From Sminthopsis crassicaudata (taxonomy: Eukaryota): DNA of 64,000 nucleotides. The notes below the pieces were generated by a model. The model was not told where the DNA came from, searched no databases, and saw nothing but the letters and a program-made list of their open reading frames with translations. The position numbers and the translations under genes are program-made. Where the stretch lies: contig NC_133622.1 in the NCBI RefSeq assembly GCF_048593235.1, positions 251,476,055 through 251,540,054 of the forward strand, given 5' to 3'. This document shows positions 4,745-64,000 of the stretch, piece by piece; positions within the stretch are counted from its first letter, which is position 1; each line of letters opens with the position of its first letter.

Positions 4745-7700
4745 TCACTCCTCGGGGCCCCCGGGCGCCCCTTCGTCTCCCCCCACTTCCGGCCCCTGCC
4801 CCTGCTCTGCTTCTGCCCCTTTGCCCTCCTCCTCCAGCCTCGCTCCACCTCCCTCGAGGCTCTCTGGGCCCAGGCCTGCGCCCGCCCCCTGGGCCCTGGG
4901 AGCCTCCTCCCTCCCCTTGCCTGCATCCTCTCCCTCCACCCGCCGGTAGATGAGGTAGCCGGGGCCCGAGAGGTCATGGGGCAGGGTGTCAGGTGCCAGG
5001 CGGCGAGAGCCCTTCTCATTGTGCAGGAAGAGGGCAAAGGCTTCAGGCCGGGACACCCGGAACTTGGTGGCACAGAGCTGGCACAGCGTGGCCGCAGAGG
5101 AGCCTGGGGGCAGGGCCAGGGTCTTGGATGTGCAGCCATTGGTGGGGTCCTGGTATGCCACACGGAGGAGGTGCTGGGAAAAGGAGAGGGCCCAGGAGTT
5201 GGCCTGACACCCAGTGGGCGCCCACTTGGCTCCCAAGGGCACAGGCAGGTCCCGGGATGCGGGGGCGGGGGGCACAGAGAAGAGGGAGCGTGGCAGGCCC
5301 CTGGGCTTCCTGAGCCTCCCCGTGGCCCTCCTACCTCTGACCCCCCCAGCTCTGACATTATTCCATATTCTGCCCCCCCCCGCCCCCGCTGTGATTCCCG
5401 GGCCCTCCCCAGCTCTGAGCCCCCCTGCTCTGATACAGAAGAGCTCCCCCCTTCTCTGGGGGGCGTCGGTTACCTTGAAGTTCCCAGTGGGTGGGAGTCT
5501 CCGCTGCTCCCAGAGGCTGAGCGAGCGCCGGAGCTCCTGGGAAGGGCTGACGGGCCGTGCCCCGGCCTGGCCCAGGCTCCCCAGCAGGGTCAGGCTGGCC
5601 ATCAGGCTGGTGAGGCAGTAGCCCCCTAGGACAGGGAGGTCTCTGGTGAGGCCGGGGCCGGAGGCCACGGGATGGGAGCCCCCCGGTTACGGGGCATGGG
5701 TGGCCGGGGCGTGGGGTGCTCACCCTCCCCCATGAGCAGGCTGGGCTCCAGGAGTTCGGCCATATACTCAGCTTCGGGCAGCAGGTCCGGGAGGTCGCAC
5801 TGAGCCAGGACGGCGCTCAGCAGGGGCAGGAATTCATCGGCTCCAGCACTCTCCCCTGCAGAGGAAAGGGCCCTTAGGGAGGCTGGGGCCCTCCATGTCC
5901 CTGGGCCACAGAGCCGGCCCCCAGCCTGGCCCCTCCACTCTTGGGGCTTTAAGGGGGACCAGAGTGGGCGCTCTCCCCTGGACCATGAGGGCCCTCAGCC
6001 CACACCTGCCCTGGGGGCCTCCTCTGAAGCCAGGCAGGGCCCCCCCCCTTTGGGGAACACTAGGGGAAACTGAAGCCCAGAGGTTCTGGGAAAGCGGCTC
6101 CTGACTGGGCCTTCTTGGGGGCAGAGGCACCTCCATTCCCGGCTCCCCCTTGCCGGGCGCCCCGGATGGTACCTGCCCAGCTCCTCAGGGCCTTGGAGAG
6201 CAGCTTGCAGACCTGCAGAAGCCGGGTGACCTTGGCCTTGGGAGAATAGCCCCCTAACAGTTTCAGCAGCTTCTCCCGGATGCGCTCCATCTCCGGCGGG
6301 GAGGGGAGAACGAGGCAGCCCTCGAAGGCTCCGGGCCCCCTCGCCTTGGCCAGCCGCAGGCCCTCCTCCAGCCGGCCCCAGGAGCCGTCCTCGGTCAGGC
6401 GCAGCCGCAGGCGGGCCAGCAGGAGGGGCCGCAGGGGCTTCAGCACCAAGCGCTGCAGGGACTTCTCCACCACGAGCTCTGGGGAGGGCGAGAGGGGGTG
6501 TCAGGGGGGCAGAGAAGGGGGCCTGCACCTGAGGAAGAAGGGGGCCCACACCCAGGGGTGGCCGATGCCGCATGCAGGGGGAATCCCAGGCTCAGCTAGG
6601 CTGGGGACGGGGGCAATGAGGAGAGCCGGGGAGGCGGGCTGGGAGATGGGGGGCAGGCACTCACCCAGACGCTCCTCGGCCACTAGCTTCTCCTGGGCCA
6701 GCTCGGCCACCAGCAGGGCCTGGGCCTGGCTCAGCACCTCCCGCACATGCTGCAGCTCCCGGGGCTCCGGCCCCGCTCGTACCCGGGTCAGCAGGTCCTG
6801 GACCAGCTGCCCGGAGAGCGTCTGTCTGTCCCGGGCCAGCTCGGCCACGGCCCGCGCTACCTGCCGCTCAGGGGCCAGGAGGGAGCAGACGGCGTCGCTC
6901 ATGGAGCGGAGCAGACGGCGCCGCCGGCCCGGGCGGGGGGACGAGGCCGGGCCCCCCGGGGGGCCCCCCTCATCCTCAGAGGCGCTGGGGGAGCCACTGT
7001 CCACCTCCCGCAGAGACGGGAGGGGAGGCACGCCCGGGCCAGCGCTCCCCGGGACCCGATATCCCCCCGAGCTGTCCCTCCTCAGGGGCCGGCGGGGGGG
7101 TGCGAAGCGAGCCTGGGCAGGGGGACCTCCGGGGGGCAGTGGCACCGGGGGCGGCGGGGCGGTGGGGGGTGACAGCGGGCTGGACGTCTCGGTGGACACC
7201 CGCACCTTGAAGCTCCTCTTGAACTTCTCGCGCTTGGCTGGGCCCAGATCCCCGGGGAAGAGGGGGTTGAAGAAGCAGAGGGCGCCTCCGGTCCCCTGGT
7301 CCAGCTCCTCAGGGGACCGAGGCTTCAGGTGGGGAATTGGGGGGGCTTCAGCCGCCGGGCCCCCGGGGGCCCTGCTGTTCAGGGAAGAGTTCCAGAACTC
7401 TGGGGAGAAGGGATTCAGGAGCGTGAGCTTTGGCGTCCCCGCCTGGTACGCACCAGCCCCCAGCTCCCCTCGCCCTCCAGTGCCTCCCGGGACACAGACA
7501 TTGAGGGGTCCACTGGGACCCTCTTCTCCGGCTCTGGGGCCCAGGAAAGCAAAGGTACGTACCCATCCCCAGGTGAGAGATGGCTTCCAGCTCCTTGTGG
7601 GTGGCTGCTCTGCGGATGGCCCTGGGCAGCTGCAGAGGGAGGAGCAGGACGTCCCTGGGGGCGAGGGGGGGCGGAGGGGTCAGGATCCTGGAGGGGGCCG

Positions 7701-10666: not shown

Positions 10667-13216
10667 CCTCAGGTTTCCTCTTCTGTGGGGACACTGCCAC
10701 CTTGGCCTGGGGAAGAGAAAAAGCAATCTGTTCCCTTGCTGCCCCCCCAACCCGAGATCCTCACCCCGTCAGGGACCCAGCTAAGGCTCACCCAGGAAGC
10801 CGGCCCAAGAGGTGGGATTCGAACCCAGAGCCCGGACTCCCACCCTAGGCTTCCGGTATGAGCCACTGTTGAATTTTAAAGGAAGCCCCAAGGGAGTCCT
10901 CAATGCTGGGTGGGGAGGGGAGAGGTGCCTTCTGGGGTCAGCAACCCCCGTGACCTCTGCCTCCTGGTCCCTATCTCTGGCCCTTGTATCTCCCTCCCAC
11001 TATCTGCCCCCCACCCCCCAGCCTCAGATCCCTCACTGCCCTATTCCCACTCGCTGCTGAGTGGTGCTGCTGGGCATCCCAAAATGGAGCTGAGCGCTCC
11101 CTCTTCACCATCAGACCCTCCCCCACTTCCCAGGGATCCAGTGGACCCCTCCATGCACAGGATTCTGGGGTCTGGCCACCCCAACTCACTCAGCAGAATC
11201 CATTGCCAGAACGCACCCTGTCTCCCCCCTGACCCAGGATGGTCCCGGGTCACCTCCCTCTCAGCACCAGGAGCTCCCACAATCCTCTCTCTGAACCCTG
11301 ACTCTTGGAGGCCCATCCCCCATCCTTGCTTCCTGGCTCCCCTGGGGTCTCAGCACATGTCCAGCTTCCTGGTCTCCTTCAATTCCAGGATTTTCTTTCC
11401 TTCACCACCTCCCCCATTAGATGGGAAGCACCTGAGGGCCAGTACCCCCAGCACTGCCCGACCCGGTGGGACCCTCCAGCCAGTCTACCCACCCCATCCC
11501 CCCCGGCCACTCGGACTCTGCCCCGGGAGCCCCCCCCCCAATCAGTTAGGACATGGCTCATCTTCCTACCTTCTTAATGGCCGTCCAGTCCTCCAGAATG
11601 TCCATGTCCTCCAGCATGTACACTATATAAGGTCCTGGAAGAGAAAAGTCAAGGAAAGCAGAAGCTGGGCCATGGCCCCTCTCTGGCTCCTTCGCCACCC
11701 AGAGCCCCAAGGCCCTTCCAGCCTCTGAAAGCTCCCAGGGGGAAGGTCTGCCTGTGTATCTGCAGCCCCCGCACATGGTGGGCACTCAACATGGCACTCC
11801 CTTTTAATACTGTGACGTCATGTGGCCTGGCCCCCTCCCCTCAGGACACTATAGAACAGGCTTCAGTGACTTTGAGGAAGGAATTCCAGATGTGGAAATT
11901 CGCTCCACTGCTGCTGATTGCAGCGCAGGGGGACCCTCAGGCCGTGGTTCCTCCAGGCGGCTGCCTCTGGGGAGGCCGGGCTCATTTCCCAGGAAGGACG
12001 TGTGGGCAGACCCAGATTGGAGCCAGCCTGGGGCGCCCAGCCCGGAGCATCCCTCCCCGTCCTCCTATGGCTGGAGCCCTCCCGCAGGGCACAGGCCCCT
12101 CCCCGGCCCCCCCCAGTGTAAAGATACCAGAGACCAGGGGCGCCTTCTTCCTCTTCCCAGACTGCAGGGACTCCCAGGACCTCGAGCTCCCTCTTGGGTG
12201 CAGCTTGTCATCCCACCATTCTGTACCAAGAAGGCAGGGTCAGCAGTGCCCCAGGCCCGCCTCCCCTCCTCCCAGCCCCCTCCCCAACCCCCCAGCCTCA
12301 CCAGAGTTGATGTCGATGCTCCGCCGGTCCTCCTCCAGCCGCTGAATCCGCTCCTGGAGCTCCCCCTGCAGGGCGTCGTACAGCAGCAGCCGCTCACTCT
12401 GGAAAGGGCACTGGGGGGTTAGGCTGGGGCCCGGCCCCCCCACCCCCCACCCCTCGGCCCCCCCTCACCTCCAGGTGCTGCCGGGCTCCCTGAAGCTCAC
12501 ACTCGTACTTGTTCCTGATCACGTCCAGACAGAAGCCCTTGTAAATGCCTGGTGGGAAGGGGAGAGGGGATCTCACCGTGGGCACGGGGCACCAGAAACC
12601 AGCACCCCCCACAGAGGAAAGCCAGCACTCACCTGCCACCTGGATCCGAACCTTGAGGCTACGTTGCAGCCCCCCCAGCGGCTCTGTGTACTCGGGGGCG
12701 CGCTCGGCCCCGACCTCCTCCAGCCGGAAGCACACCTGGCTCAGCCGCTCCTTGAACAGCCTGAGAAACCAGAGTTAGTGGTCGCCCCCAGGACCCTCCC
12801 CGCCCCCCCGACCCCTCGGCGCACTCACTTCTCCTTCAGTTCGGAGAACTGCTTCTCCAGGTCCGACATCTCGTCAAGGCACTCGACCCGGCGCCGCTCA
12901 CAGTCCTCGTCGTCCATGTCTGTGGGACAGGAGGCCGATTGGGGGCGGGTGGGGGGGCTAGTGTGCTGCTGGTGTGTGGGGGGGTGGCGGTCAGGGGTCC
13001 AGCACACGGCCAATCGGAGGGGCGTCTGGCATGGGGCAGCCCTGGGGGAGGGGTACAGGCAGCCTTACCTGAGCTCTCCCCATCGGACTCAGTCTGGCTG
13101 GCGCTCTGCTCGTCCTCGCTGCCCTCCTCCTCCAGCCCGTTCATCTCCGGGGCAGAGTCCCCGTCCCCGTCCGCCTCCATGGCCCTGGCGTCTTTGCTCA
13201 AAGGCTGGCCTGACAT
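10667..13216 (-). CDS. BRMS1: Breast cancer metastasis suppressor 1 (SIN3/HDAC complex subunit), confident coding exons
   Basis: Exons (minus): 13216-13069 (ATG at 13216; acceptor at 13222), 12919-12829, 12760-12633, 12548-12469, 12398-12302, 12220-12128, 11634-11570, 10706-10667. Peptides [83 protein letters not shown] and VSPQKRK match BRMS1, and phases are continuous. The stop-containing last exon is ambiguous (see next feature). Confidence 0.95.
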
Positions 13217-17593: not shown

Positions 17594-19041
17594 TCAGCAT
17601 CGCCTGGGGGAGTCTGGGTACTTCATCTTCAACTCCTGTTTAAACTGGCGGAAGAGGATTTTGTTGCGTTGATTCTCTGCCTCCTTCTGGGGGTGGAAAT
17701 CCCCTGGCATCTTGAAGCCCTTGTGGACCAGGAAAGCATCGTTCAGCACCTCAAACTCGTACCCTGCCACATGGAGTTCACAGGCCTGGCAAGGGAAGGG
17801 GGGAGGGGAAATAGTTAAATACTGGCTCCGGTTCCCTTCCCGGGGCCCCCTGCCTCTTACCAGACACCTTTCTTGGGGCCCCTTCCCTCCCACCCCAGGG
17901 CGAGAAGGGCTGGCACCTGGCTGATGCGGTTGAAGCCGTACTGGCGAAACCTCTCATCGTAGGAAGGCACTGCCCCTCCAGCCACATAGAAGGGCTCCCA
18001 GGGGTCCTGCCAGGTCACCCGATAGGCAGGGCGCAGGGGTCCCCCTGGGGGCAGAGTGAGCCATCGGGAGTAGTTGGTGGGGGCCTGGCATCGGGGGCAC
18101 AGTTCGGCGTAGAATGGGCGCACATGTCCCATCTTCAGGAAACGCATCAGCTCGATCTTAGTGCGGGGGACACGGACCCCCTGGCGGATCTCGAAGGCCG
18201 GCACCACCAGCGCCCTGCCGGCCTTGCCCTCGCCCAGGGCCAGCAGCTCCAGCAGGCCGGTCCAGAGCCCCTCGCTGGGCACCATGTCCACATCCACGAC
18301 GAGGGCGTGGCCGGCGCCCTCTCGGGCCACGTTCCGGAGCAAGTTGTTGGGGTAGGAGACGTTGGTGGCCAGCGCGTAGTTGCGGCCCGAGCGGCTCCGT
18401 GCGCCCAGGCTCGTGAACACGTCGCTGCAGCTGCTGATGCGCGCGTACTCCCCGGGTTCTCGGGGGTCGGGAACCGCGGCCTCAGTGCGTGCAGGGCACA
18501 CCAGGTGCATGGTGAGGCGGTCGCGCACGGCCTGCGTGCAGAGCGCGCCCAGCGCGTAGGTCAGCACGGTGGCCAGCTGCGCCTCCTCGGGGCGCGCCGC
18601 GAACACCGCCACGGCCAGAGGGCCGGCCCAGCGCTCCAGCAGCGTGCCCACATGGCCCAGGTTGCTGAGGCTGGCATGTGTGGCCAGCAGCAGGGCGTCG
18701 CGAGGGCGGCGTGAGGGGTCCCCCAGCACGTGCCGGTATACCCGGTAGTCGCCGCTGGCGTCCAGGGCGCCCCCCGCGGCCAGCACTGCCCGCAGCTGCT
18801 CCTTGGCACTCTCGGCGGCCCGGCGCTGCAGGCTGGCGCCCAGGGCCGCCCCGCCGGGGAAGAGCTGCCCGTAGCGGCGCCGCTGCTCGCGCCCGTGCAG
18901 TCCGGCCAGCAGCGACAGGTAGACGAACTGCAGCAGCGCCACGGCCAGCAGCGCCGCCAGCGCCAGCTTGTAGGCCGAGCAGCGGCCGCCCGCGTGCCCG
19001 CCGCCCGCCGCCGCCGCCGCCACCGCCAGCGGGTTGGGCAT
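17594..19041 (-). CDS. B4GAT1: Beta-1,4-glucuronyltransferase 1 (formerly B3GNT1), 2 exons, ~438 aa
   Basis: Exons 19041-17917 and 17785-17594 with a 131-nt GT-AG phase-0 intron. Type II TM segment, [21 protein letters not shown] (DxD) motif, [18 protein letters not shown]-like [15 protein letters not shown]|ACELHVAG and C-terminal KYPDSPRRC* match B4GAT1. Confidence 0.97.
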
Positions 19042-19992
19042 CGCGCTCCGCCCGGGCCGGCCGGGGCCGGGGGGAGAGGAGCGGGCGAGGAAGAGGCCGA
19101 GGCGGGCCGCTCGGAGGGAGCGCAGACGCTGCCGCCGCCGTCCCCGCTGCAGCTGCTACTGCTGCCGCCGAGAGCCCGTCACTGCGGATCCGCTGGGGTG
19201 CGCGAGCTCGCCCTCTGCCCAGCGGGAGGACGCACTGCAACCGCGCGCCCCCGTGGCGAGCCAGGCCGCTGCCTTCTGCGGCTGCTCCGGCCCAGTGATG
19301 TATCCGAGGAAAGGGATCTCGGTGGGGGGAGGGGGGGGCGATCGCCGAGCCCAGGGGCGCGGCCTCGCTGGCAAAGTCAACATTTCGGGAGGGGGCGAGG
19401 CACGGAGTGGGGGGGCGTGCAAAAGGGCCCCGCGCCTTCCTCCTTGCCTAAAGCAAGGGCGCGAGGACGGAAGCAGTTGCGGTGGCTGTAGTAGTGCCGG
19501 GAATGGGGAAGCTGCCCTGTGTGCGGCTCCCAGCGGGGAGCCCGGGCAGCGTGCTCGCCCAGGCCCCGGGAGGGCAGGGCAGCGACCTCTGCAAACCCAC
19601 TTCGGGGAGGGGGGGAGGGAGGACACAGTGCGCGCAGTGCAGCTAACATGGAAGGGCAGCCCCTGACACTGCGCCCCCTCCCGTTTGCACCCCCCGCTGC
19701 AACTGTGGCGGGAGGGGCGGGAGCGGACTTGCCCCGTTTCAGGAAACCGGGAGTGTGTATGGTGTGTGTGCGCGCGCGTGCGCGTGTGCTAAGTGTGTGG
19801 GTGTATGCGCGCGGTCCCTCTTTGCATCAGGAATCGCCCGGCCCGCCCGGCAGGGGCTCGCGCAGATTCTCCCGCAGTTCGGGGCCAGCGAAGTCCGAGA
19901 AAGAGGAAGAAGGAGAGGGGGAGGCGGGCGCAGTGCGCGCCGCCGCCGGGCGCAGGAACAAGGGGCTGCGCGGAGGAGCGAGCCCGCGGCGG

Positions 19993-20074
19993 GACGAGGT
20001 GGCCGAGTGGTTAAGGCGATGGACTGCTAATCCATTGTGCTCTGCACGCGTGGGTTCGAATCCCATCCTCGTCG
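19993..20074 (+). tRNA. TRS-GCT: tRNA-Ser (anticodon GCT), 82 nt, intronless, long variable arm
   Basis: GACGAGGTGGCCGAGTGGTTAAGGCGATGGACTGCTAATCCATTGTGCTCTGCACGCGTGGGTTCGAATCCCATCCTCGTCG. Acceptor stem GACGAGG/CCTCGTC, A box, anticodon loop CTGCTAA and B box GGTTCGAATCC are all present. Confidence 0.98.
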
Positions 20075-22712: not shown

Positions 22713-24690
22713 TAATTAAATTATTTTTTACAAAAATTTTATGCATAGGTAATTTTCTAGTATTGACGATTGCAAAACCTTTTGTTCCAACTTTTCCCCT
22801 CCTTCCCCCCCCCCCCCATGTCAGGTTGACCAATACGTGTTAAATATATTAAAGTATATGTTATATACAATATATGTATATATCCATACAGTTATTTTAC
22901 TACACAAGAAGAATCAGACTTGGAAATAGTGTACAATTAACCTGTGAAGGAAATCAAAAATGCACGCAGACAAAAACAGAGGGACTGGGAATTCTATGGA
23001 GTGGTTCATAGTTGTCTCCCAGAATTCTTTCGCTGGGTGTAGCCGGTTCAATTCATTACTGCTCTATTGGAGCTGATTTGGTTCATCTCATTGTTGGAGA
23101 GGGCCACGTCCATCAGAATTGATCATCATACAGTATTGTTGTTGAAGTATACAACGATCTCCTGGTCCTGCTCATTTCACTCAGCATCAGTTCGTGTGAG
23201 TCTCTCCAGGCCTCTTTGTATTCATCCTGTGGTCATTTCTTATAGAACAATAATATTCCATAATATTCATGTACCACAATTTATTCAGCCATTCTCCAGT
23301 TGATGGGCATCCGCGTAGTTTCCAGTTTCTGGCCACTACAAAGAGGGCTGCCACAAACATTCTTTTTTTTCTTTTTAAATTAATTTTATAATTATAAAAT
23401 TTTTTTTGAAAGTATATATGCATGAGTAATTTTTTTATAACATTATTCCTTATATTCATTTTTTCAAATTTTCCCCTCCCTCCCTGTACTCCCTCCCCTA
23501 GATGATAGGCAATCCCATACATTTTACATGTGTTACAGTATAACCTAGATACAATATATGTGTGTAAATCCCATTTTCTTGTTGCACGTTAAGTATTAGA
23601 TTCCGAAGGTATAAGTAATCTGGGTAGATAGACAGTAGTGCTAACAGTTTACATTCACTTCCTAATGTTCCTTCTCTGGGTGTAGTTGTTTCTGTCCATC
23701 ATTGATCAACTGGAAGTGAGTTGGATCTTCTTTATGTTGAAGATATCCACTTCCATCAGAATACACCTTCATACAGTATTGTTGTTGAAGTGTATAGTGA
23801 TCTTCTGGTTCTGCTCATTTCACTCAGCATCAGTTGATGTGAGTCTCTCCAAGCCTCTCTGTATTCCTCCTGCTGGTCATTTCTTACAGAGCAATAATAT
23901 TCCATAACCTTCATATACCATAATTTACCCAACCATTCTCCAATGGATGGACATCCATTCATCTTCCAGTTTCTGGCCACTACAAAAAGAGCTGCCACAA
24001 ACATTTTGGCACACACAGGTCCCTTTCCCTTCTTTAGTATTTCCTTGGGATATAAGCCCAGGAGTAGCACTGCTGGATCAAAGGGTATGCACAGTTTGAT
24101 AACTTTTTGGGCATAATTCCAAATTGCTCTCCAGAATGGCCGGATTCTTTCACAGCTCCACCAACAATGTATCAGTGTCTCAGTTTTCCTACATCCCCTC
24201 CAACATTCATCATTATTTGTTCCTGTCATCTTAGCCAATCTAACAGGTGTGTAGTGGTATCTCAGAGTTGTCTTAATTTGCATTTATCTGATCAGTAGTG
24301 CTACAAACATTCTTGCACATATAGGTCCCTTGCCCTTCTTTTAAATCTCTTTGGGCTATAAACCCAATAGTAACACTGCTGGATCAAAGGGTGTTATCAA
24401 ACTGTGAATACACATAGTTTTGGGCATAGTTCCAAATCATTCTCCAGAATGGCTGGATGTATTCACAATTACACCAACAATGTATCAGTGTCCCAGTTTT
24501 CCCATATCCTCTCCAACATTCTGTATTATCTTTCCCTTTCATTCTAGACAATCTGACTGGTGTGTAGTGGTATCTCAGAGTTGTCTTAATTTGCATTTCT
24601 CTGATTAATAATGACTTGGAGCATCTTTTCATATGGCTAGAAATAGTTTCAATTTCTTCATTTGAGAATTATCTGTTCATATCCTTTGAA
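22713..24690 (-). mobile_element. Marsupial L1 3' fragment (outer, ~22713-23363 + 24299-24690) interrupted by a second L1
   Basis: L1 ORF2 C-terminal peptides (MFVAALFVVARNWKLRGCPSTGEWLNKLWYM; IREMQIKTTLRYHYTPVRL) plus an L1 3'UTR/poly(A) end. Confidence 0.9.
23364..24298 (-). mobile_element. 5'-truncated younger L1 nested in the older L1
   Basis: Poly-T start, L1 3'UTR, open ORF2 C-terminus (23756-24283, MQIKTTLRYHYTPVRLAKM...). Flanked by the duplication TGC(C/T)ACAAACATTCT (23349-23363; 24299-24313). Confidence 0.9.
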
Positions 24691-25140
24691 ACCATCAACT
24701 TTTTAAAAACATAATCACTATGGGAATTTTTTTCCTCTTCATAATCTTGAAATCTTAGGTCAATAATGAAACTATTAGGTCAAATTTATTTTTCTTCTAT
24801 AATTCCAAGCTGTTTTCCCCAATGATGTGCCAACTGGGAAGCTCTGCCAATGCTGTGAGTATGACTGATTTCTTACTGTGCCCCCTCTCCAAATTCAGTC
24901 TTGAAAACAGGATTTCGGAGAGGCCTTGAAAAGAGCTTTCAGTTGCAGTTCTCTTATTATTTGTGATTTGGAGTTGATAGAATTTCATTCCCCCTTTTGA
25001 AACCTGTTTCTATTAAGGAAGGGCTCTTAGTCTGCTATCTTCGTATCAATTTTCTAAGCATTTTTAGGTGTCAGACTTTTGTAAAGGTTTGGGGCAATGA
25101 TTCTTTTTCCCTTCCCATTCTGTAACCTTTTTTTAAAGTC

Positions 25141-31600: not shown

Positions 31601-34600
31601 TTATTAATCACATTTGCCAGAGGGGGACACTGAGTCTTGGAGAGATGAAGGCTGCCACAGCCAGTAATTGTGAGCCCAAGTCTCCTGGCTCTGGAGCATT
31701 CCCAGCATTCCCAGTAGCTAAGAGATGTGTGGTAGGCTGGGGAAGCAGCTTCTGTCCCCCCTTCCCAGGCTGCCCTCAGCCCTGCCCGGCTCACCAGCCT
31801 GGAGCAGCTCGGCCCTGGTCTCCAGCTCATAGGCCTGTGGGTGGGGCGCCTTCTTGTCCAGGTAATATCGGGCAAACTCCTGGAGCAACAGAGAGCCCGA
31901 AGGCCTGGTGAAGGGCGGGGGCACGAGGTCTCCGTTCCACACCGGGGTCGCCCTGAGACAAGTCTAGAAACCAATCTGGTCATTGGGTCGAGGCCAGCCC
32001 TAGAGCTGGAAGGGACCCCCAGGGCCAGCTGCCGAGAGATACTGAGGCTTCAAATGAACAAGTCGGGAGCAAAAACAACAGGCTCATAGAGCTAGGCTTG
32101 GAGGGGACCTGAAGGGCAGGGTCTCCAGCCCTCTCCATCGGAGAGGGGAAAGCTAGGAGCCAGGAAGTAAAAGGTGGCATCCGTCCAAGGTCACAGTCCA
32201 CTGCCCAAGGTCACAGTCCATTGCCCACGGTCATACAGTCCATGGTCTCCCGGGTTTCCTGTCCTGCCACCAGGATCTAGCTAAGCTGGAGATGGCTAGG
32301 GAGAGGGGGGACGGGGGAAGGAGGGGAGGACTTGGCCGGTTCCCAGGGGAGGATCCAGAGAGGAAGCTCAGCTCACCAAGTGGGACAGGGACAGGTAGCA
32401 GACGGTGGAGACGAGGATTCCCACGCATGGGGTGATGAAGTAGCCGAGGGCCGAGGTCTGAGCGTCCACTCCGCCTGCGGTGGGAATGGGAGCTGAGAAC
32501 CCAGGCCAGACAGCCTGGCTCTCCCAGGAGCCTCTCTGGGAGCCCCGGCCCAGCCCCTGGGGCCCGGCATAGCTGGAAAACTTCTCTCCTCCCTTCTCTA
32601 GGATGTGTGTTCCTCTGGCATCCTCCCCGGCTCCCAGCCAACTCAGCTCTCAGTGGCTGATATTTTTCCTACCCCCGAACCCAGGAGTCCTGGCTCTGCA
32701 GCCAGCTTCCCCTCCCAGCCTCCTTCCCAACCAGAGCCCAACACTACGCCCACACTCACTGGCCATGGACATCAGCATGGCGAGAGCAGCAAAGGTCCCG
32801 GCTAAGCCTTGGCCGCTGAGGAAAAGGGTGCTGTACATGGGGGGCATGGCCCCCAGCTGCCCAAAGAGACTGCCTTGGAGGATGGCACAGAAGGCTGGGG
32901 GGAAAGCCAAACCATGGTCCCCAGTGGGCATTTCCCTTGGAAGTGGAGCGGTGAGCGCCCTGGCCAGGGGAGCGGCCTGAAGCGGCCAGGAGCCTGAGGA
33001 AAAGCTCCTGCTCTCCGGGGGGCAGCTCTGTGGCCAGGGTTCCAAGTCCTTGGCAAACGGGGTCATGTTCTCTGCACAAGACTGGGGAAGGAGCTGCCTA
33101 GCAATGTTTGCTCAGGCCTTGGAACTCTCAAGCATCCGCTCTCTCCCTCTCACAATGGGGGCGACAAATCCATTTCTTCCTCTTTAAAATGAAGGACTCA
33201 ACTAGAACTTTTAAGCTCTCCAGGCCAGCTCTGAATCCCAGTTCTAAGGACCATCCCAGGTCTGGCGTTTCCCCCCCCCCCGACATTCTTTGTTCTAAGG
33301 TACCCCTCAGTCCTGATATTCTAGATTGGGTTCTATGTTCTACAGTTGCTTCAGATGCCGCCAGTCTAGGTTTGGTTCTAGGTCCTAAGGATGTGATGGT
33401 CCCTCCCACTTCTGACATTCTCTCCTAGCTCTGATGATTGCAGGCCATGTTGCTCTATCCCACCTCCAGACTGGGACTGGAGAATCCCTAGGCCCAGGAC
33501 TCCGTGCCGAGGCCCAGGCCACACGGGGCACTCACAGTTGATGAACCAGATGGAGGCCATGGTGATGGAGAAGAAGAGTTCAGGGCTCATGTCCACCTTG
33601 ACGAGGGCGGCCGTCAGGACGAAGAGCATCAGGATGCCCAGGAGGCTGCCGAGGATGCGGACCCTCTCTGGGATGCTGCGCGGGACCAGAAACAGCTGTG
33701 GCCCCTACTCTGCTCTGGTGCCGCTAAGAAAGAGCCAGCTTTGGACAGGAGAGGACAGTGGGTGCAGCAGCTGTGACCGTGGCTGGGTGGAGCTGATGAA
33801 AGAGCCAGCTATGGAGCTGTCGCTAAGGATCATGGACGGCTGAGGGGGCAGTGACTGATGGGACACAGCAGTGACAAAGGCAAGAAGTAAGTGGCCCCCC
33901 CCCCCCCGTTGAGGCTCCCCAGGGAGTGGGGGCTCACCACTGGTAAAGGAAAGAGTTGAGGAGGGTGAAGAGCAGCAGAGGCAGCTGGGACAGGAGGGTC
34001 ATCCAGTTGTTGAAGTTGAAGGCATCCCCGGGGCTTGTGAGGTTGCCTCCCGAAGGCTCCCCCGTGACATTGACAAGGGCCAGCCGAGCCTGGAAGTACT
34101 GAGGGGAGATGGGCAGGGAGGCCACGGTCAAGGCCAGAAGGTGACACGGCCAGAAGGTGACACGGCCGGTCTGCAGCCAGGAGCCCCAAAGCCTTCCCGT
34201 GTCTGGGGAGAACTGGGAGCCCAGAAGGGCCGGGGCCAGAGAGGGGAGGGGCCGCGGGGGTGCAGTGGGCCCTGCCCGGGGAGCCGACTGGGGAGGCTGT
34301 GACTCCGGGGGAGTTTGTAGCCTCGGAGCCTTTTCCCGGCCGTCAAGTGGGGCAGGGTATGGGGGGGAGCACGGAGGTCCTCGCCCGGCTCTGAGAGTGC
34401 GATCTCGTGAACACGTCCCGCCTCCCGCGCCCTCCTCTCCCGCGTCGGTCCGTTCCCGGGCTCCTCTCACCGGAATGGCAGTGATAAAGAAGTTCCAGGG
34501 CAGCAGGGTCCCCAAACCCAGGATAAAGAAGCTGGTCCCGACTAGGTGGTAGCTGTGGGGGAGGGGAGAGTCAGAGACCCCCCCCAGCGGCCCCCCACTC

Positions 34601-41949: not shown

Positions 41950-42098
41950 NNNNNNNNNNNNNNNNNNNNNNNNNNNNNNNNNNNNNNNNNNNNNNNNNNN
42001 NNNNNNNNNNNNNNNNNNNNNNNNNNNNNNNNNNNNNNNNNNNNNNNNNNNNNNNNNNNNNNNNNNNNNNNNNNNNNNNNNNNNNNNNNNNNNNNNNN
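41950..42098. other. Assembly gap (149 N)
   Basis: N-run. Confidence 1.
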
Positions 42099-43850: not shown

Positions 43851-45143
43851 GTCAGCCAAAAATAATACACCAAATCCTGATTTGTAGCTATTGCTGCTAT
43901 CTGAGGTATACATGTTCCTTCTGAACATTTAACAATGGGCTCTCTTAGAGAGAGTTGGCGTGGTCCCAGTCTACATTTGGGTCAGAAGAAAGAGAAAACA
44001 CTGTTAACCTTCTGTTGGAGGGACTGCAAAGCTCAGAGACCTCCTCCAGCCTCCTGCCTTCTAGACCAGATGCAAGCCCCCTCCTTTGAGTTTACATTGA
44101 GAGCTCTTCACCCTGGGGTTCAGCGATCCCGGTCCCAGGACACTAGCCTCCAGGCTCCATCACCATGACTTAGCCCCTCTGCTCCTTCACCCCTCTGACC
44201 CTTGGCCCCTCTCCTCCTTAGTGCCTCTCCGGCCCGGGCCAGTCTCTCCACTGCCCCTTAGGATGCTGAGTTTCCTCCAAATCTCCCCTCCCATGGGAGA
44301 GCTCTGCTATAACTGCCAGCGCCCTTCCCCTGGAAATCAGCTTGTCTCCGGAGCTGGAGTCACATCCCTCTCCTGGATTTCATTTTCTTTCTTTTCCCTG
44401 GATCATGTGCAGTTTTTTAAAAATAGATAATCAATTCAATGTGTTAGTTCCCAAACTTTTGTCTCTGTCTTCCTTCTGTGTCTGGACCTTCTGTTCCCTT
44501 CTGTGCATTTCACAAACGTTTCACTGACATGTTGTTCTTCCCTTTGTTCCCCACTCCCACTCCTCCAGTCACTTCTGGGCTCCATTCCTGACCCTCGGGA
44601 CTCCTTTCTCCCCCGAGTCCCAGAATCCCTCATTGGATAGGTTGGTTACTCCAGAACCTTCTCCCCTGCACCTGCCCCCTCCTCCCCAGCATCCTCTCCC
44701 CCAGTAGAAGGGCAACACTTGATAAAGGCCTATTGACTTGAGTATCTCCCCACCCCCATCCCAACCCCTGCTAGACCAAGGCCCACAGTAATAACAATAA
44801 TAATAATAACCCTAACCAAGCATCCTCTGCTGAGCCTTCCCGAGGCAGAAGGTAGGAAGCAGGAGGCCATGTCTGTCCCTTGGAACCATGGCCTGGTCAT
44901 TGCTTCGATGGCGGTATTTAGTCTCCAAGTTGTTTTTCTTTCTGACGTGGCGGCCGACCATCTCAGTCGCCATTCTCCTCCCCCTGCGTGTTCTGCATCC
45001 GTTCCCACAAATCACTTTGGGTCTGTGTCTTCTTCCTCTGTTATAGTGCAGCCAATTTGATTAGAGCGCCCTTCTCCCTTTCCCCAGGCAGGGCAATGGT
45101 GGGAGGCAGGAAGATTTGCGTTCCAATCCTGCTCTGACCCCAT

Positions 45144-46838
45144 GGGTGAGTGTGCGAGTCAGGTGTGTGTGTGAGTGTGAGTGTGAGTGAGAATGTGAGT
45201 GTGTGAGTCAGGTGTGTGTGTGAGTGTGAGTGTGAGTGAGAATGTGAGTGTGTGAGTCAGGTGTGTGTGTGAGTGTGAGTGAGAATGTGAGTGTGCCAGT
45301 CAGGTGTGTGTGTGAATGTGAGTGTGAGTGAGAATGTGAGTGTGTGAGTCAGGTGTGTGTGTGAATGTGAGTGTGAGTGAGAATGTGAGTGTGTGAGTCA
45401 GGTGTGTGTGAGTGTGAGTGTGAGAATGCGAGTGTGCGAGTCAGGTGTGTGTGAGTGTGAGTGTGAGAATGTGAGTGTGTGAGTCAGGTGTGTGTGTGAA
45501 TGTGAGTGTGAGTGAGAATGTGAGTGTGTGAGTCAGGTGTGTGTGAGTGTGAGTGTGAGAATGCGAGTGTGCGAGTCAGGTGTGTGTGAGTGTGAGTGTG
45601 AGAATGTGAGTGTGTGTCAGGTGTGTGTGAGTGTGAGTGAGAATGCGAGTGTGTGAGTCAGGTGTGTGTGTGTGAGTGTGAGTGTGAGTGAGAATGTGAG
45701 TGTGCGAGTCAGGTGTGTGTGTGAGTGTGAGTGTGAGTGAGAATGTGAGTGTGTGTCAGGTGTGTGTGTGAGTGTGAGTGAGAATGCGAGTGTGCGAGTC
45801 AGGTGTGTGTGAGTGTGAGTGTGAGTGAGAATGTGAGTGTGTTATTCAGATGTATGTGTGAGTGTGAGTGTGAGTGAGAATGTGAGTGTGTGAGTCAGGT
45901 GTGTGTGTGTGAGTGTGAGAATGTGAGTGTATGAGTCAGGTGTGTGTGTGAGTGTGAGTGTATGAGTCAGGTGTGTGTGTGAGTGTGAGTGTGAGTGAGA
46001 ATGTGAGTGTGTGTCAGGTGTGTGTGTGAGTGTGAGTGAGAATGTGAGNNNNNNNNNNNNNNNNNNNNNNNNNNNNNNNNNNNNNNNNNNNNNNNNNNNN
46101 NNNNNNNNNNNNNNNNNNNNNNNNNNNNNNNNNNNNNNNNNNNNNNNNNNNNNNNNNNNNNNNNNNNNNNNNNNNNCAGGTGTGTGTGTGAGTGTGAGTG
46201 TGTGAGTGTGTGTCAGGTGTGTGTGTGACTGTGAGTGAGAATGTGAGTGTGTGAGTCAGGTGTGTGTGTGAGTGTGTGAGTGAGAATGTGAGTGTGTGAG
46301 TCAGGTGTGTGTGTGAGTGTGAGTGAGAATGTGAGTGTGCAAGTCAAGTGTGTGTGAGTGTGAGTGTGAGTGAGTGTGTGAGTCAGGTGTGTGTGTGTGA
46401 GTGAGAATGTGAGTGTGCGAGTCAGGTGTGTGTGTGAGTGTGTGAGTGAGAATGTGAGTGTGTGAGTCAGGTGTGTGTGTGAGTGTGAGTGAGAATGTGA
46501 GTGTGCAAGTCAGGTGTGTGTGTGAGTGTGAGTGTGAGTGAGTGTGTGAGTCAGGTGTGTGTGTGAGTGTGAGAATGTGAGTGTGCGAGTCAGGTGTGTG
46601 TGTGAGTGTGAGTGTGAGTGAGAATGTGAGTGTGTGAGTCAGGTGTGTGTGAGTGTCAGTGTGAGTGAGAATGTGAGTGTGTGAGTCAGGTGTGTGTGAG
46701 TGTGAGTGTGAGTGAGAATGTGAGTGTGTGAGTCAGGTGTGTGTGAGTGTGAGTGTGAGTGAGAATGTGAGTGTGTGAGTCAGGTGTGTGTGAGTGTGAG
46801 TGTGTGAGTCAGGTGTGTGTGTGTGACTGTCAGTGTGT
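45144..46838. repeat. ~1.7-kb GT-derived compound minisatellite (~40-50-bp variable units), interrupted by an assembly gap
   Basis: Recurring unit GAGTCAGGTGTGTGTG(TG)AGTGTGAGTG(TGAGTG)AGAATGTGAGTGTGT; N-run at 46049-46175. Confidence 0.97.
46049..46175. other. Assembly gap (127 N) inside the minisatellite
   Basis: N-run. Confidence 1.
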
Positions 46839-58017: not shown

Positions 58018-59030
58018 CTCCCAGACTGATTTTGTTTTTTGACTAGGCAAAAGAGACCATTTTCTGCCTCATTTTTAAAAATATTTTTATTTTCAAAACC
58101 TATGCAAGGATAATTTTTCAACATTGACCCTTGCAAAACTTTTGTGTTCCAAATATCCCCCCTTCCTCCCAATCCCTCCCTGATAGAGCAAGTAATCCAA
58201 TATGTCAACATATATTTTAAGATGTTTAATATATATTGGATTACTTTCTATCTAGGGGAGAAAGTGAGGGGAAGGGGGGAATTATTAGATTATCTTTGCA
58301 TATGTTTTTGAAAATAAAAAGCTTCAATAAATAAAGATTGAAAATATGTGCATACATATTTATACAATTATTTTGCTGCAAAAGAAAAATCAGATCAAAA
58401 AGGAAAAAAATGAGAGAGAAAACAAAAAGCAAGTGAATAATATCAAAAAGAGTGAAAATGCTGTCTTGCATGTATACATATATTGTATTTAATTTATACT
58501 TTAACATATGTAACATGTATTGGTCAACCTGCCATCTGAGGGAAGGGGTGGGGGGAAGGAGGGGAAAAGTTGGAACAAAAGGCTTGGCAATTGTCAATGC
58601 TATAAAATTAACCATGCATAGATCTGGTAAATAAAAAGCTATAATAAAAAAAGGGAAAAAAATGCTGTCTCGGTCCACACTCAGTTCCCATAGTCCTCTC
58701 TGTGCGGACAGACGGCTCTCTCCCATCTCAAGATCATCGGAGCTGTCTGCCTCATTTCTTACCTAGCCTCAGTCACTGAATGGGTGTTGCCTCATCAAAC
58801 TGAGACCTGTTAAAGATTTTAACTTGAAAAGGCTGAGATCTCCTACAGCATCCAGGGCCATCTCCAGTCCGCCTGATCTCTCTCTGGCCACTGGACCCAG
58901 AAGGCTCTGAAGGGGAAAGTGAAGCAGGTGACCTTGCACAGCCCTCCCTCATTTAATCCAATTTCATGGCATCTCCTCCCAGATGTCACGGCCGTCTTCA
59001 AGAACAAAAGACAAAGGACAGCATCAAATT
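58018..59030 (-). mobile_element. Marsupial interspersed repeat (WALLSI/MdoRep-like; family name uncertain) split by nested L1 3' fragments
   Basis: Element halves at 58018-58074 and 58746-59030 are separated by an L1 fragment (58075-58745) with TSD TCTGCCTCATTT. Confidence 0.65.
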
Positions 59031-59559: not shown

Positions 59560-60639
59560 GCAAGTCTTGGCAGGTTGCAATGTGGGGCCAAAGCTGTGCA
59601 AATGGGAAGTTTGTTAGGAATAAATGTAAAGTCTCTGACTCGGGTCCAAAACATCAGCCACACAGAGAGAAGAGGGAAGCCCAAGTTCCACAGTGAGGTG
59701 TCCATGAGAAATACCCGGGGGGTATTTTGTGGATTGTAGTCAGTCTCAGCAGTCTACTGTGACCACTGGCAAAAGCTCATGGGATTGTAGATGGCATCAA
59801 AAGGCATAGGATGTTAGACAGCGAGAATAACAATCTCTGTATTATTTAGAAGCATTTCTTAAATGTCGACTGCACCAAGAACAGTGCTGGGCACTGGGGA
59901 GAGAAAAGGGAAAAGGGAATAGCTGCCATGTTGGTGAGTGATTAGTCTGGTTGGGAGAGACAGCGATGACAGGTACAGAAAGAGGCATAAACAAATAGAT
60001 AGAAAACGTGGAGTCTGATGGGGAGAACCCCGGACAGCCTCTATTTTGGGAGAAGGCTCCATCTTCCACGCCAGTCCTCATCTCTCATTGGTGAGGGTCA
60101 TTTTGGAGAGGGGCCTGGGTGACCAACTTTTCTGACCCTCCTGTCCTGTCCTGTCCTGTTTCTGACTTCCTGGACTTGGCCGCCATTATGCCGAGAGCAG
60201 GAAAGGTTACTCCTTCTGCTTTGGACCCGTTGAGTTGGAGTACCGAGTTTGAAATGCCCAGTGGGAGACGAGGGCTGGGTGTGGGAATCCAGGAGGCCCG
60301 GACCCACGAGCTCGGCCATGACACCGGAGCGGAAAAGCGCTGAGGCCCGAAGCTCTCCGGCCTGGTCAGGAACCCGAGCCTCTGCAGGGACTCCTTCACT
60401 GTGGGTCTTTCCTTCCCTGGTTTGAGGAGGTGGCAGAGGACACCTTGACCATTTCCCTGGGCCTCAGCTGCTTGTGCAGCGGATGTTAGAGTCATCTGCC
60501 CCCGTGGGCCTCTTCGGGCTCAAAGGTGCCACCTCTAGAATGAGGGGACGGGGCCTCGGATTGGACCATCACCAAGGTCCCTCCCACCATTCTACATATG
60601 TGTCCTGTTCTCTCCTAGCCCTGACATCCTAAGCTCCGT

Positions 60640-61300
60640 GTCCGCGGTGCCTCCTTGCCGGACGTTCCAGTTCTGGGTTCTAAGCCCTCAGGTTCCAGGC
60701 CCCAGTCCCAGGTCCCTCCCAGCGCTCGCGCTGCCCGCCTCCCCCCTCTCTCTGCGGCGCCGGCGGCCCTCCGCTCCGCGCTCCCCCTCCCGATCCCGAC
60801 GGGCGGGGGAGGGGTCCCAGTGACGTCACGCTCCTCCCCGCTCTCTCCCCCTCCCGCGGCCTCGCGCTCTTCTTGCCTATTTTGGAAGCGGAGCCGCAGC
60901 CCCGCCGCCGAGCGCGCGCCGCGAGCCGCCTTTTAAAGGCAACGGGCCTCGCGGCTCCCCCGCCCTCCCTGGCGCCGGGGCCCAGGCCAAGCCAGGCGAG
61001 CGGAGAGGAGCTGGGGAGCCCGCGCCGGCCCCTCCCCTCCCTGGCCCGCGCGCCCCAGCTTCTCGCTCCCGAGGCTCTTGAGGCACGCGGAGATCCTCAG
61101 TGCGCTTGGAGATCCTCTCGGGCCGAAGCCAAAGCGCGCCTGCAGGTGAGGAGAGAACGCCGGCCGGCTCCTCCCGCCCTGTGGCGCCCCAGCCTCGGCC
61201 GGGGGCGGGGTGGCCGGCGGGGGCCCTGCCAAGCCCCATCCCGAGCCCCCCGGCCGCCCCCGGCCGCTCTAGCGCAGCCTAGAACCCGGGACCTTTTTTA
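60640..61300 (+). promoter_or_regulatory. Orphan CpG-island promoter/enhancer with CRE, CArG and TATA-like elements
   Basis: GC box ~60801-60810, TGACGTCA 60821-60828, CCTATTTTGG 60876-60885, TTTTAAA 60931-60937, donor CAG|GTGAGG at 61145/61146. Confidence 0.75.
60960..61145 (+). ncRNA. Putative non-coding first exon (lncRNA/eRNA or distal NPAS4 5' exon)
   Basis: ATG-free GC-rich stretch between a TATA-like element and a consensus 5' splice site. The start is inferred at ~25-30 nt after the TATA-like element. Confidence 0.4.
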
Positions 61301-61964
61301 GAGCCCCTGTCTCAGGTGACTTTCTGGAGCTTCAGGGCTGGAAGGGACTTCGGCCCCTCATCTGACCCCCCGGAAGGAAAGGCCTCAGCCACGCAGGCAG
61401 AATCCGGGCCGGGGCTGCTGGCTTTCCCGGCATGCCGGGCGGGAGAGAGCGCCGGCCTGGGAGCCGGTTCCGGGGCCCACCTCACCAGCGACATCTCCCC
61501 TCAGGGAGTCTCAGTTTCCTTTCCTGACACCCACATCACGGGGTAGGAGGGAAAGTGCCCTTGCCCTTGCCTGGAACGCTCCACATTCGGGAGCTGTTAA
61601 TGTTGTTCCCAGTTTTCTCCCCACTGACCTCCAGGTACCACCTCTGGGCAGCCCCGGGAGAGACGCCACCCTTTGGATATCATTGCTCTCCGGGGTACCT
61701 CTGAGCCTCCCACCAGCCTCGAAAAGAGCACTACGGCAGATTACTGCCGTTTCCTCCATTTTACAGGGAGGTAAACTGAGGCTCAGACGAGTCAGGGAGT
61801 AAGAGGGAAGGCCAGGCCTGGAAGCCAGATCTCCCAGCTATCATTGGAGGGCTCCTTCTGTCCTCGGGCTTTAGAACAAGATTAGGATCTGGGGTCCTGG
61901 GGCTTGCTTCTTTAAACTTTTGATCATTGTATTGCAGCATAATTAGTGTTTTTCCAGTTTGGTT

Positions 61965-62090
61965 TTGTTTTGGCAATTGAGGTTAAGTGACTTGCCCAGA
62001 GTCACACAGCCAGGAAGTATTGTGTCTGAAATCAAATTTGAACTCAGGTCCTCCTGACTTCAGGGCTGGTGCTCTAACCACTGCTGCCCC
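61965..62090 (-). mobile_element. WSINE1-type SINE (a truncated copy also lies at ~57805-57905)
   Basis: GGTTAAGTGACTTGCCCAGAGTCAC...TTTGAACTCAGGTCCTCCTGACTTCAGGGCTGGTGCTCTAACCACTGC. Confidence 0.85.
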
Positions 62091-64000
62091 ATTCTGTTTG
62101 TTTTTATAGTATGATGCTTTAAGACCAGCAAAGTGCTTTACCAATGTTAGCTCCTCAAAAGTACCCAGAGAAGTACGTGCTGGTATCATCCCCATTTTAC
62201 AGATGAGAAAATCCAGGATCTCACAGCTAGCAAATGTCTGTGCCTGGATCTGCATCCTCCCTGACTTTAGGTCAGAACTCTATTTACTGCCCCGGCCAAT
62301 TGCCATGCATTAAAATTCAAATTTTATCCTTTAAGAAAAATAAAATAAATCAATTTAAATGTGATGCCTTTAAAAGGAAAATAAAATTCCTGAAAAGGAA
62401 TCTCTAGTTTGCCCCAGACTCACTGTCCAAGTGATTCAGTTTGCAGAAAAGGTTAAGGCCTCCGATAGAGAGAGAAGTGGAGCTGGAGCTCTCTGGAGGG
62501 AAAAGGGAAAAGCAGAATTGCCTCTAAGTCTCTTTCGATGATTGCTATGACCTCTATCTTCCTGTAGTCTTCCCTTCCCTAAAAGGCTCTGCTCAGACTC
62601 GTCTTCTTTGGACAGTTCCCATGATCCTCTAGCCATCTTGGATTTTCTCAGAACAACCTGCTGGATCTTCCTCACTTGCTGTCTGTTAGGCCCTAACCCA
62701 CACAATCCCAGAATCCCAGAGTAGAAAGGAACTGTCATTGCTTCAAAACTCTGCCTTGTACCTGAAGGGCAAACATCGGTGTGGAGCATACCCAAAATCT
62801 ATCCTTATTTCAAGTGGTGGGAACCCTGGCTCTAAACCCAGAGGGTGTGGGTTCAGATCTCTACCGCCCCCTCCCCCCTGATCTTATAAACAGTTGGAAC
62901 TATAGACCTTAGTATCTTCATTTCTGAAAATCAGGAGGCTCATCTGAATGGCCTGGCAGGGTCTCTGATGCTCTAGATCTGTGTTCCTCACTTCCCTCCC
63001 CCCGCCAGGCAGTTTCATGAGCCCAGGTACTGTCATTCTGCGTGGGGCACACAGTGGGTACTTACATTGAACTCAGTTTATCACAGCCCAAGTTTGTCTT
63101 GTATATTCTGTCCAGGGGAGATACTCGGCCTTTCCTGAATTAGAACAGGGGGAAGAAGAGCGCAGTAGATGTGATTTTTTTCTTCAGGAGCAAGGAATGA
63201 TGGACTCATCTTCTTGGAGATGAGAAAGGCTGGGACGTGAAGCTACAGACCATGTTCTACAGACTGTGGCCTGGAAAGAGCCACCTCTGGAGTCAGTTAT
63301 AGCTAGCCTTTGCCATGGGGATTTGCTCCATGCCCTTTCCATCCAGAAAGGGAAGTTCCTCCCCTGGGCAGCAGTGCTCAGGGTCCATGGGTCAGAGAAG
63401 GGCAGTGTCCCACAGCGCCCTCAAAGCTGCTATCACCGTCATGGCCCCCTGAATCCCCTCATTACCTCAATCCGTCCGAGGGGGCTTGGCCTGGGCCATA
63501 CTCTTAAGCAAGACCCAGGGGATTGCAAGTCACGGCAGAGTAGCTGTAGCGGTCCAAAGGTTTCCCAATCGTTTGCTTCCCGGCGGCCCTGGAAAGTAGG
63601 GAATACATTGGGAAGTCACTAAGGCACTGAGAGGGGAAAGGAGCTCTTGTTTGCTTCAAACAAACAGGAAGTCAGGTAGATCGCAGTGAGCTGCTACTTC
63701 CTGATGCTGTAGAGAAGAAGAAATATGTTCAGAGACTGCCAAAAGCTCAGCTGGAGCTGGAAGGAGCCTCGGCAGCTACAAGCCCAACCTTATTTTGTTT
63801 CTGCTGTCCCCCACGATCTGTCCCTTACTCAGAGCCCTCCAGTGTGGGGAGCCCACCCTTGTCCGGGCAGCTCCCTCTTTGGACAGTTCTTGTGGTTGAA
63901 GAGAAGCCCCTGAGTCCAGGCCTTCCCAGGGCGGCGCCATTTTGAATTCAGCCCTCCAGGCCGGCACCTGCACGGGGTGGGATCTGGGCTGGCGGTGGTA

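Follow-up and report, generated by a model that had tools for sequence, protein, structure and literature searches.

What, if anything, starts at a CpG island that carries the sites of an inducible promoter and a strong splice donor, yet has no coding sequence and lies about 25 kb from the 5′ end of SLC29A2? Such an island occurs in the window analysed here, a 64-kb stretch of Sminthopsis crassicaudata DNA to which all positions refer. The original prediction took it for a conserved, activity-dependent promoter or enhancer directed towards NPAS4. We put at about even the chance that the island is an orphan Pol II promoter of the CpG-island class and inducible type, acting on the + strand and followed by a non-coding first exon of about 185 nt. 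Below, we set out the features that point to this assignment together with those that favour other explanations.

The CpG island and its surroundings

By the criteria of Gardiner-Garden and Frommer (at least 200 bp, GC of at least 0.5 and CpG observed/expected of at least 0.6), a contiguous CpG-island run extends from 60560 to 61360, about 800 bp. Within it, positions 60640-61300 have a GC content of 0.75, a CpG observed/expected ratio of 0.85 and 77 CpG. The edges are sharp, the ratio being 0.13-0.45 in the 100-nt bins beside the island, and the preceding 24 kb or so is CpG-poor, AT-richer, repeat-rich DNA with three N gaps, in agreement with the earlier description of an isolated island after repeat-rich DNA. 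A BLAST comparison with the window found the island to be single-copy there. Given CpG decay, a ratio kept this high over about 800 bp points to hypomethylation that has lasted in the germline, and so to a regulatory element under protection. Alternatively, the island might be a functionless GC-rich patch, left for example by biased gene conversion in a GC-rich region, in which the motifs described below came together by chance and were noticed afterwards. The left half of the window is indeed GC-rich throughout, but the high ratio is confined to these roughly 800 bp, and the remaining islands of similar strength in the window lie at gene 5′ ends.

Other origins were considered and rejected. 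None of the ten open reading frames of 60088-64000 matches a Pfam family, which speaks against a coding gene, and a 205-codon open + strand frame across the island had no relatives in a protein word search. Exact look-ups recorded none of ten ATG-initiated reading frames as a called gene, a result of little weight, since non-coding reading frames are rarely called. The earlier claim that the island has no coding sequence was thus upheld, and nothing coding follows it within the window. A structured RNA was rejected because Rfam at its gathering score finds none at the island and the fold of the putative exon is no more stable than those of its shuffles (z −0.71). Across the window the gathering score returned only a tRNA at 19993-20074, and relaxing the threshold to E ≤ 1 added two matches far below it. 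This tRNA is a tRNA-Ser (anticodon GCT, + strand, 66 bits) that borders the window’s strongest CpG island (18001-20000, observed/expected 0.84-0.89), beside the B4GAT1-like exon. An LTR or other repeat origin was likewise rejected, as the island lacks terminal repeats and has no second copy in the window; an LTR is also unlikely because a motif scan of 60300-61700 found neither AATAAA nor ATTAAA.

Sequencing runs provided a further view of the locus. Four runs of one study, none recorded as RNA, contain 82-97% of the sampled words from 60400-61600, and fifteen other runs under the same species label contain essentially none of them. Because each of the four comprises 650-850 million letters, too few for a kilobase picked at random from a mammalian-sized genome to be assembled, we infer enrichment of the locus in those libraries, whether through open chromatin, ChIP, capture or RNA. 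In the four runs the promoter and intron are as completely represented as the putative exon, with no sign of spliced RNA.

Promoter-type motifs and their chance expectation

Direct reading of the sequence recovered every motif that had originally been listed, namely a GC box, a CRE, a CArG box, TTTTAAA and a splice donor. An Sp1-type GC box, GGGCGG, lies on the + strand at 60801-60806, inside GGGCGGGGGAGGGG. It is followed by a full palindromic CRE, TGACGTCA, at 60821-60828, some 140 nt before the inferred start, and, at a CRE-CArG spacing of 55 nt, by a consensus CArG box (CC(A/T)6GG) and predicted SRF site, CCTATTTTGG, on the + strand at 60876-60885, at about −85. The TATA-like TTTTAAA (60931-60937) lies at about −30 on the + strand within the near-palindrome CCTTTTAAAGG (60929-60939), which is TATA-like on both strands and doubles as a one-mismatch CArG-like decamer. 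TTTTAAA is the sole TATA-like match in 60300-61700, where there is no canonical TATAWAW.

The CRE plus SRE layout that had been claimed for the island is therefore present, with both consensus sites upstream of the TATA-like element. A layout of CRE plus TATA with an SRE allows a promoter to respond to cAMP/Ca2+ and to MAPK/actin signalling. CRE-dependent induction is said to have a TATA requirement, reportedly described by Conkright and colleagues in 2003. We took as the mark of an inducible CRE promoter a full TGACGTCA followed by a TATA box at a distance of no more than about 300 bp; here 110 nt separate the CRE at 60821 from TTTTAAA, downstream of it at 60931, which is TATA-like only. The window’s only other full CRE (TGACGTCA, 11813-11820) adjoins a BRMS1-like exon (11561-11785, − strand).

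Like the promoters of FOS, EGR1 and NR4A1, the island combines a consensus CArG box with a consensus CRE that lies no more than 300 nt before an element of TATA type. Unlike them, it has no coding sequence after its putative first exon in the window and has a weak TATA-type element, and its Ets core overlaps the CArG box instead of flanking it. The overlap, which had been remarked on before, consists of a GGAAG at 60884-60888 that shares the 3′ GG of the CArG box and so lacks the spacing proper to an Ets/TCF site. A motif scan of 60300-61700 found no CCGGAAGT or SMGGAAGY Ets match, so the arrangement is not that of a FOS-type ternary-complex site. Nor did the motif scan find a MEF2 site, as YTAWWWWTAR or in relaxed form, and the island thus lacks a SARE-type cluster of CREB, MEF2 and SRF sites, defined as three consensus sites within about 100-160 bp.

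To compare these motifs with chance, we simulated 50,000 sequences from a first-order Markov model with the island’s own composition; as the motifs had been picked after looking, the figures overstate significance and are upper bounds. A full CRE occurred in a fraction of 0.0006 of the simulated islands, a CArG box in 0.009, a TATA-like hexamer on either strand in 0.043 and a donor of at least 11 bits on either strand in 0.047. A TATA-like element followed at 60-500 nt by a donor of at least 11 bits was found in 0.0006, and no simulation had the CRE, CArG box, TATA-like element and strong donor in promoter order on the + strand (0/50,000). Across the 64-kb window, full CREs number two against 0.34 expected. 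CArG boxes are not rare there (five seen, 5.5 expected), and an ATG-free state, found in 8% of simulated islands too, is weak evidence. The last two results agree with a functionless patch, but the ordered motif set and the enrichment of the locus inferred for the four small runs do not, and we regard such a patch as distinctly improbable. The motif arrangement is clearly more than chance, and allowing for a thousand other motif sets that might have been picked still leaves it unlikely to be accidental.

Orphan CpG islands are reported, by Illingworth and colleagues in 2010, to act as unannotated promoters. The island resembles these in being isolated, far from coding 5′ ends and furnished with promoter-type motifs.

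The putative first exon and the direction of transcription

A putative non-coding first exon of about 184 nt would occupy 60962-61145 on the + strand, its start placed by the TATA-like element and its end set by the donor. Donors were scored with a Shapiro-type matrix, and the scores are approximate; the 5′ splice donor, CAG/GTGAGG (61143-61151, + strand, break at 61145/61146), reaches 11.3 bits. Including this one, eight donors of at least 11 bits occur in the 64-kb window, three on the + strand and five on the − strand, and it is the only + strand donor of at least 9 bits in 59600-64000. From 60598 to 61432, over a span of 834 nt, the + strand is free of ATG, which bears out the prediction of an ATG-free stretch of about 185 nt ending at a consensus donor. 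Two short repeats lie in this region: an exact 10-nt direct repeat, GGAGATCCTC, at 61089-61098 and 61108-61117, 19 nt apart, inside the putative exon, and a perfect 13-nt GC-rich inverted repeat, CGGCCGGGGGCGG / CCGCCCCCGGCCG, at 61196-61208 and 61254-61266, with arms 45 nt apart, just past the donor.

The placing of splice and polyadenylation signals bears on the direction of transcription. On the + strand, the first poly(A) hexamers after the island are at 62309-62380, beyond the donor. Leftward on the − strand there is no donor of at least 9 bits until 58763, about 2 kb away, and a poly(A) hexamer is found at 58957. An asymmetry of U1 sites and poly(A) signals reportedly marks the productive direction of a promoter, a finding attributed to Almada and colleagues in 2013. 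With a U1 site nearby on the + strand and none leftward on the − strand, the + strand direction is therefore favoured.

Strong CpG-island promoters usually show positive GC skew past the start. Here the + strand skew is negative, reaching −0.45 at 60700-60799 and lying between −0.04 and −0.17 over 60800-61299, and reading the sequence at the predicted start revealed no initiator-type CA. Both features count against a + strand promoter, and because of them the start near 60962 is placed by the TATA-like element alone. It is conceivable that the main transcript lies on the − strand, or that a bidirectional promoter has a dominant − strand product, starting near 60900-61200 and running leftward. 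The − strand is G-rich over 60600-61000, as expected downstream of a CpG-island start, and CCTTTTAAAGG could serve as a TATA-like element in either direction. Against this, the late donor and early poly(A) hexamer on the − strand are the signature of a short upstream-antisense RNA, and the CRE and CArG box would fall downstream of the start. We therefore consider a leftward main transcript quite improbable.

If transcription runs rightward from the island, the partner of the first exon cannot be named from the window. Acceptor-like sites occur at about one per 690 nt, which is the background rate, with candidates including 61767 and 63188 (61960-62040 was skipped), and no second exon could be assigned in the window from acceptors at background and no further + strand donor of at least 9 bits. 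The absence of such a donor means that a partner within the window would be a terminal exon ending near 62309-62380; otherwise it lies beyond 64000. SINE/MIR-like repeats are present 3′ of the island at 61760-62300, and one of them supplies the strong acceptor-like site at 61767 (ttacag/GGAGGT).

If the island is a + strand promoter, it might work as follows. Sp1-type and CREB-type factors would keep the island open, CREB with the TATA-type core would provide cAMP/Ca2+ inducibility, and SRF at the CArG box could add serum, actin or MAPK input. Since the TATA-like element is at once a one-mismatch CArG, SRF might bind there as well and so touch the core promoter. Pol II would start near 60962 and the first exon would end at the strong U1 site at 61145/61146, where U1 binding at 61146 would shield the transcript from early termination. 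The exon would then be spliced to a partner outside what the window allows to be assigned, and the product may be a spliced lncRNA or an alternative 5′ exon, placed upstream, for the next gene on the + strand. Given its motifs, RNA from the island would probably be stimulus-inducible.

The gene neighbourhood and NPAS4

The protein-coding exons recognised to the left of the island are on the − strand. They comprise a VPS9-domain exon of RIN type (5629-5994), BRMS1-like exons recognised by eye (11561-11785 and 12828-13064), a Glyco_transf_49 exon of B4GAT1 type (17597-17953) and an equilibrative-nucleoside-transporter exon of SLC29A2 type (about 33531-33704; E = 1.2e-07 to human ENT1). The order in human 11q13 is RIN1, BRMS1, B4GAT1 and SLC29A2, then NPAS4 on the + strand. 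The RIN-, B4GAT1- and ENT-type exons on the − strand follow the human order, as expected from the original placement beside SLC29A2. Gene order and orientation thus fit human 11q13, NPAS4 itself lying outside the 64-kb window. From this synteny, the next + strand gene is probably NPAS4 and a link of the island to it is plausible. Repeats of the window include L1-type reverse-transcriptase ORF fragments in the repeat-rich DNA between B4GAT1 and SLC29A2 (23190-24700, − strand, for example 23759-24283) and a long dinucleotide-type microsatellite at 45044-46732, which translates as T-H-S-L runs and has an N gap inside it (46049-46176). The microsatellite tract is probably the cause of the assembly break there; a further N gap, 41950-42098, lies about 3 kb upstream of it.

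In the mouse, two or three activity-regulated enhancers lie upstream of the Npas4 promoter (10.1101/146357; PMC6376993), and one conserved Npas4 enhancer gives rise to a long non-coding eRNA required for Npas4 induction (PMC12359370). The CArG boxes bound by SRF at mouse Npas4, at −960 (CCTAATATGG) and −4109 (CCAAATATGG), are conserved (PMC4789231), and the start of human NPAS4 has a CREB/SRF/MEF2 cluster conserved between human and mouse (PMC3561385, supplementary file 1). At mouse Gadd45g, CTATAAAAGG at −31/−22 is a predicted CArG box, and ChIP detected SRF binding at the promoter (PMC4789231). Our search of the literature on Npas4 regulation found no CpG island, splice donor or lncRNA at the island’s relative position. 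The island shares with the Npas4 upstream elements a place on the NPAS4 side of SLC29A2 and SRF- and CREB-type sites, but differs from them in lacking a MEF2 site and in being a CpG island with a splice donor. Its CArG box is CCTATTTTGG, compared with CCTAATATGG and CCAAATATGG in the mouse, and, judged by these sequences, the island element is not an obvious counterpart of the mouse SRF sites at −960 and −4109.

These known elements raise the possibility that the island is itself a distal regulatory element, whether of enhancer type, a Polycomb target or an orphan CpG-island tether for NPAS4 or SLC29A2. Such an element would make at most a short, unstable, unspliced and bidirectional RNA, and the donor would be incidental. 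Its position, ahead of the presumed NPAS4, is what one would expect of such an element, as is the precedent of several activity-regulated enhancers upstream of mouse Npas4, one of them making a long non-coding eRNA. The lack of positive GC skew past the putative start and the failure to assign an acceptor agree with it too. On the other hand, a high CpG observed/expected ratio together with a CRE and a suitably spaced TATA-like element resembles a promoter more than an enhancer, so strong a donor within 200 nt would arise by chance in a fraction of only about 0.05 of islands, counting either strand, and the SRF-bound sites in the mouse have other CArG sequences (PMC4789231). We regard a distal element of this kind as rather unlikely.

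Returning to the + strand promoter, we asked how much of the original prediction survives. The isolated island, the promoter-like + strand layout, the ATG-free stretch leading to a strong donor, the absence of coding sequence and the synteny all stood. The fuller version, an ancient activity-inducible promoter upstream in the NPAS4 locus, whose spliced non-coding exon would serve as an alternative NPAS4 5′ UTR or belong to a lncRNA controlling induction, is in our judgement improbable.

Few activity-induced transcription factors are as neuron-specific as NPAS4, whose rapid induction serves as a model of how enhancers and promoters communicate. Were the island a lineage-specific orphan, it would be one more unannotated promoter, and ordinary. 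If it is a CRE plus SRE CpG-island promoter upstream of NPAS4, it would be a further control point there, as a second start, a source of spliced regulatory RNA or a tethering island. Were it an ancient promoter, the NPAS4 locus, for which only enhancers and an unspliced eRNA have so far been described, would gain an element of promoter type and, if kept across marsupials and eutherians, the element could be tested in mouse neurons.
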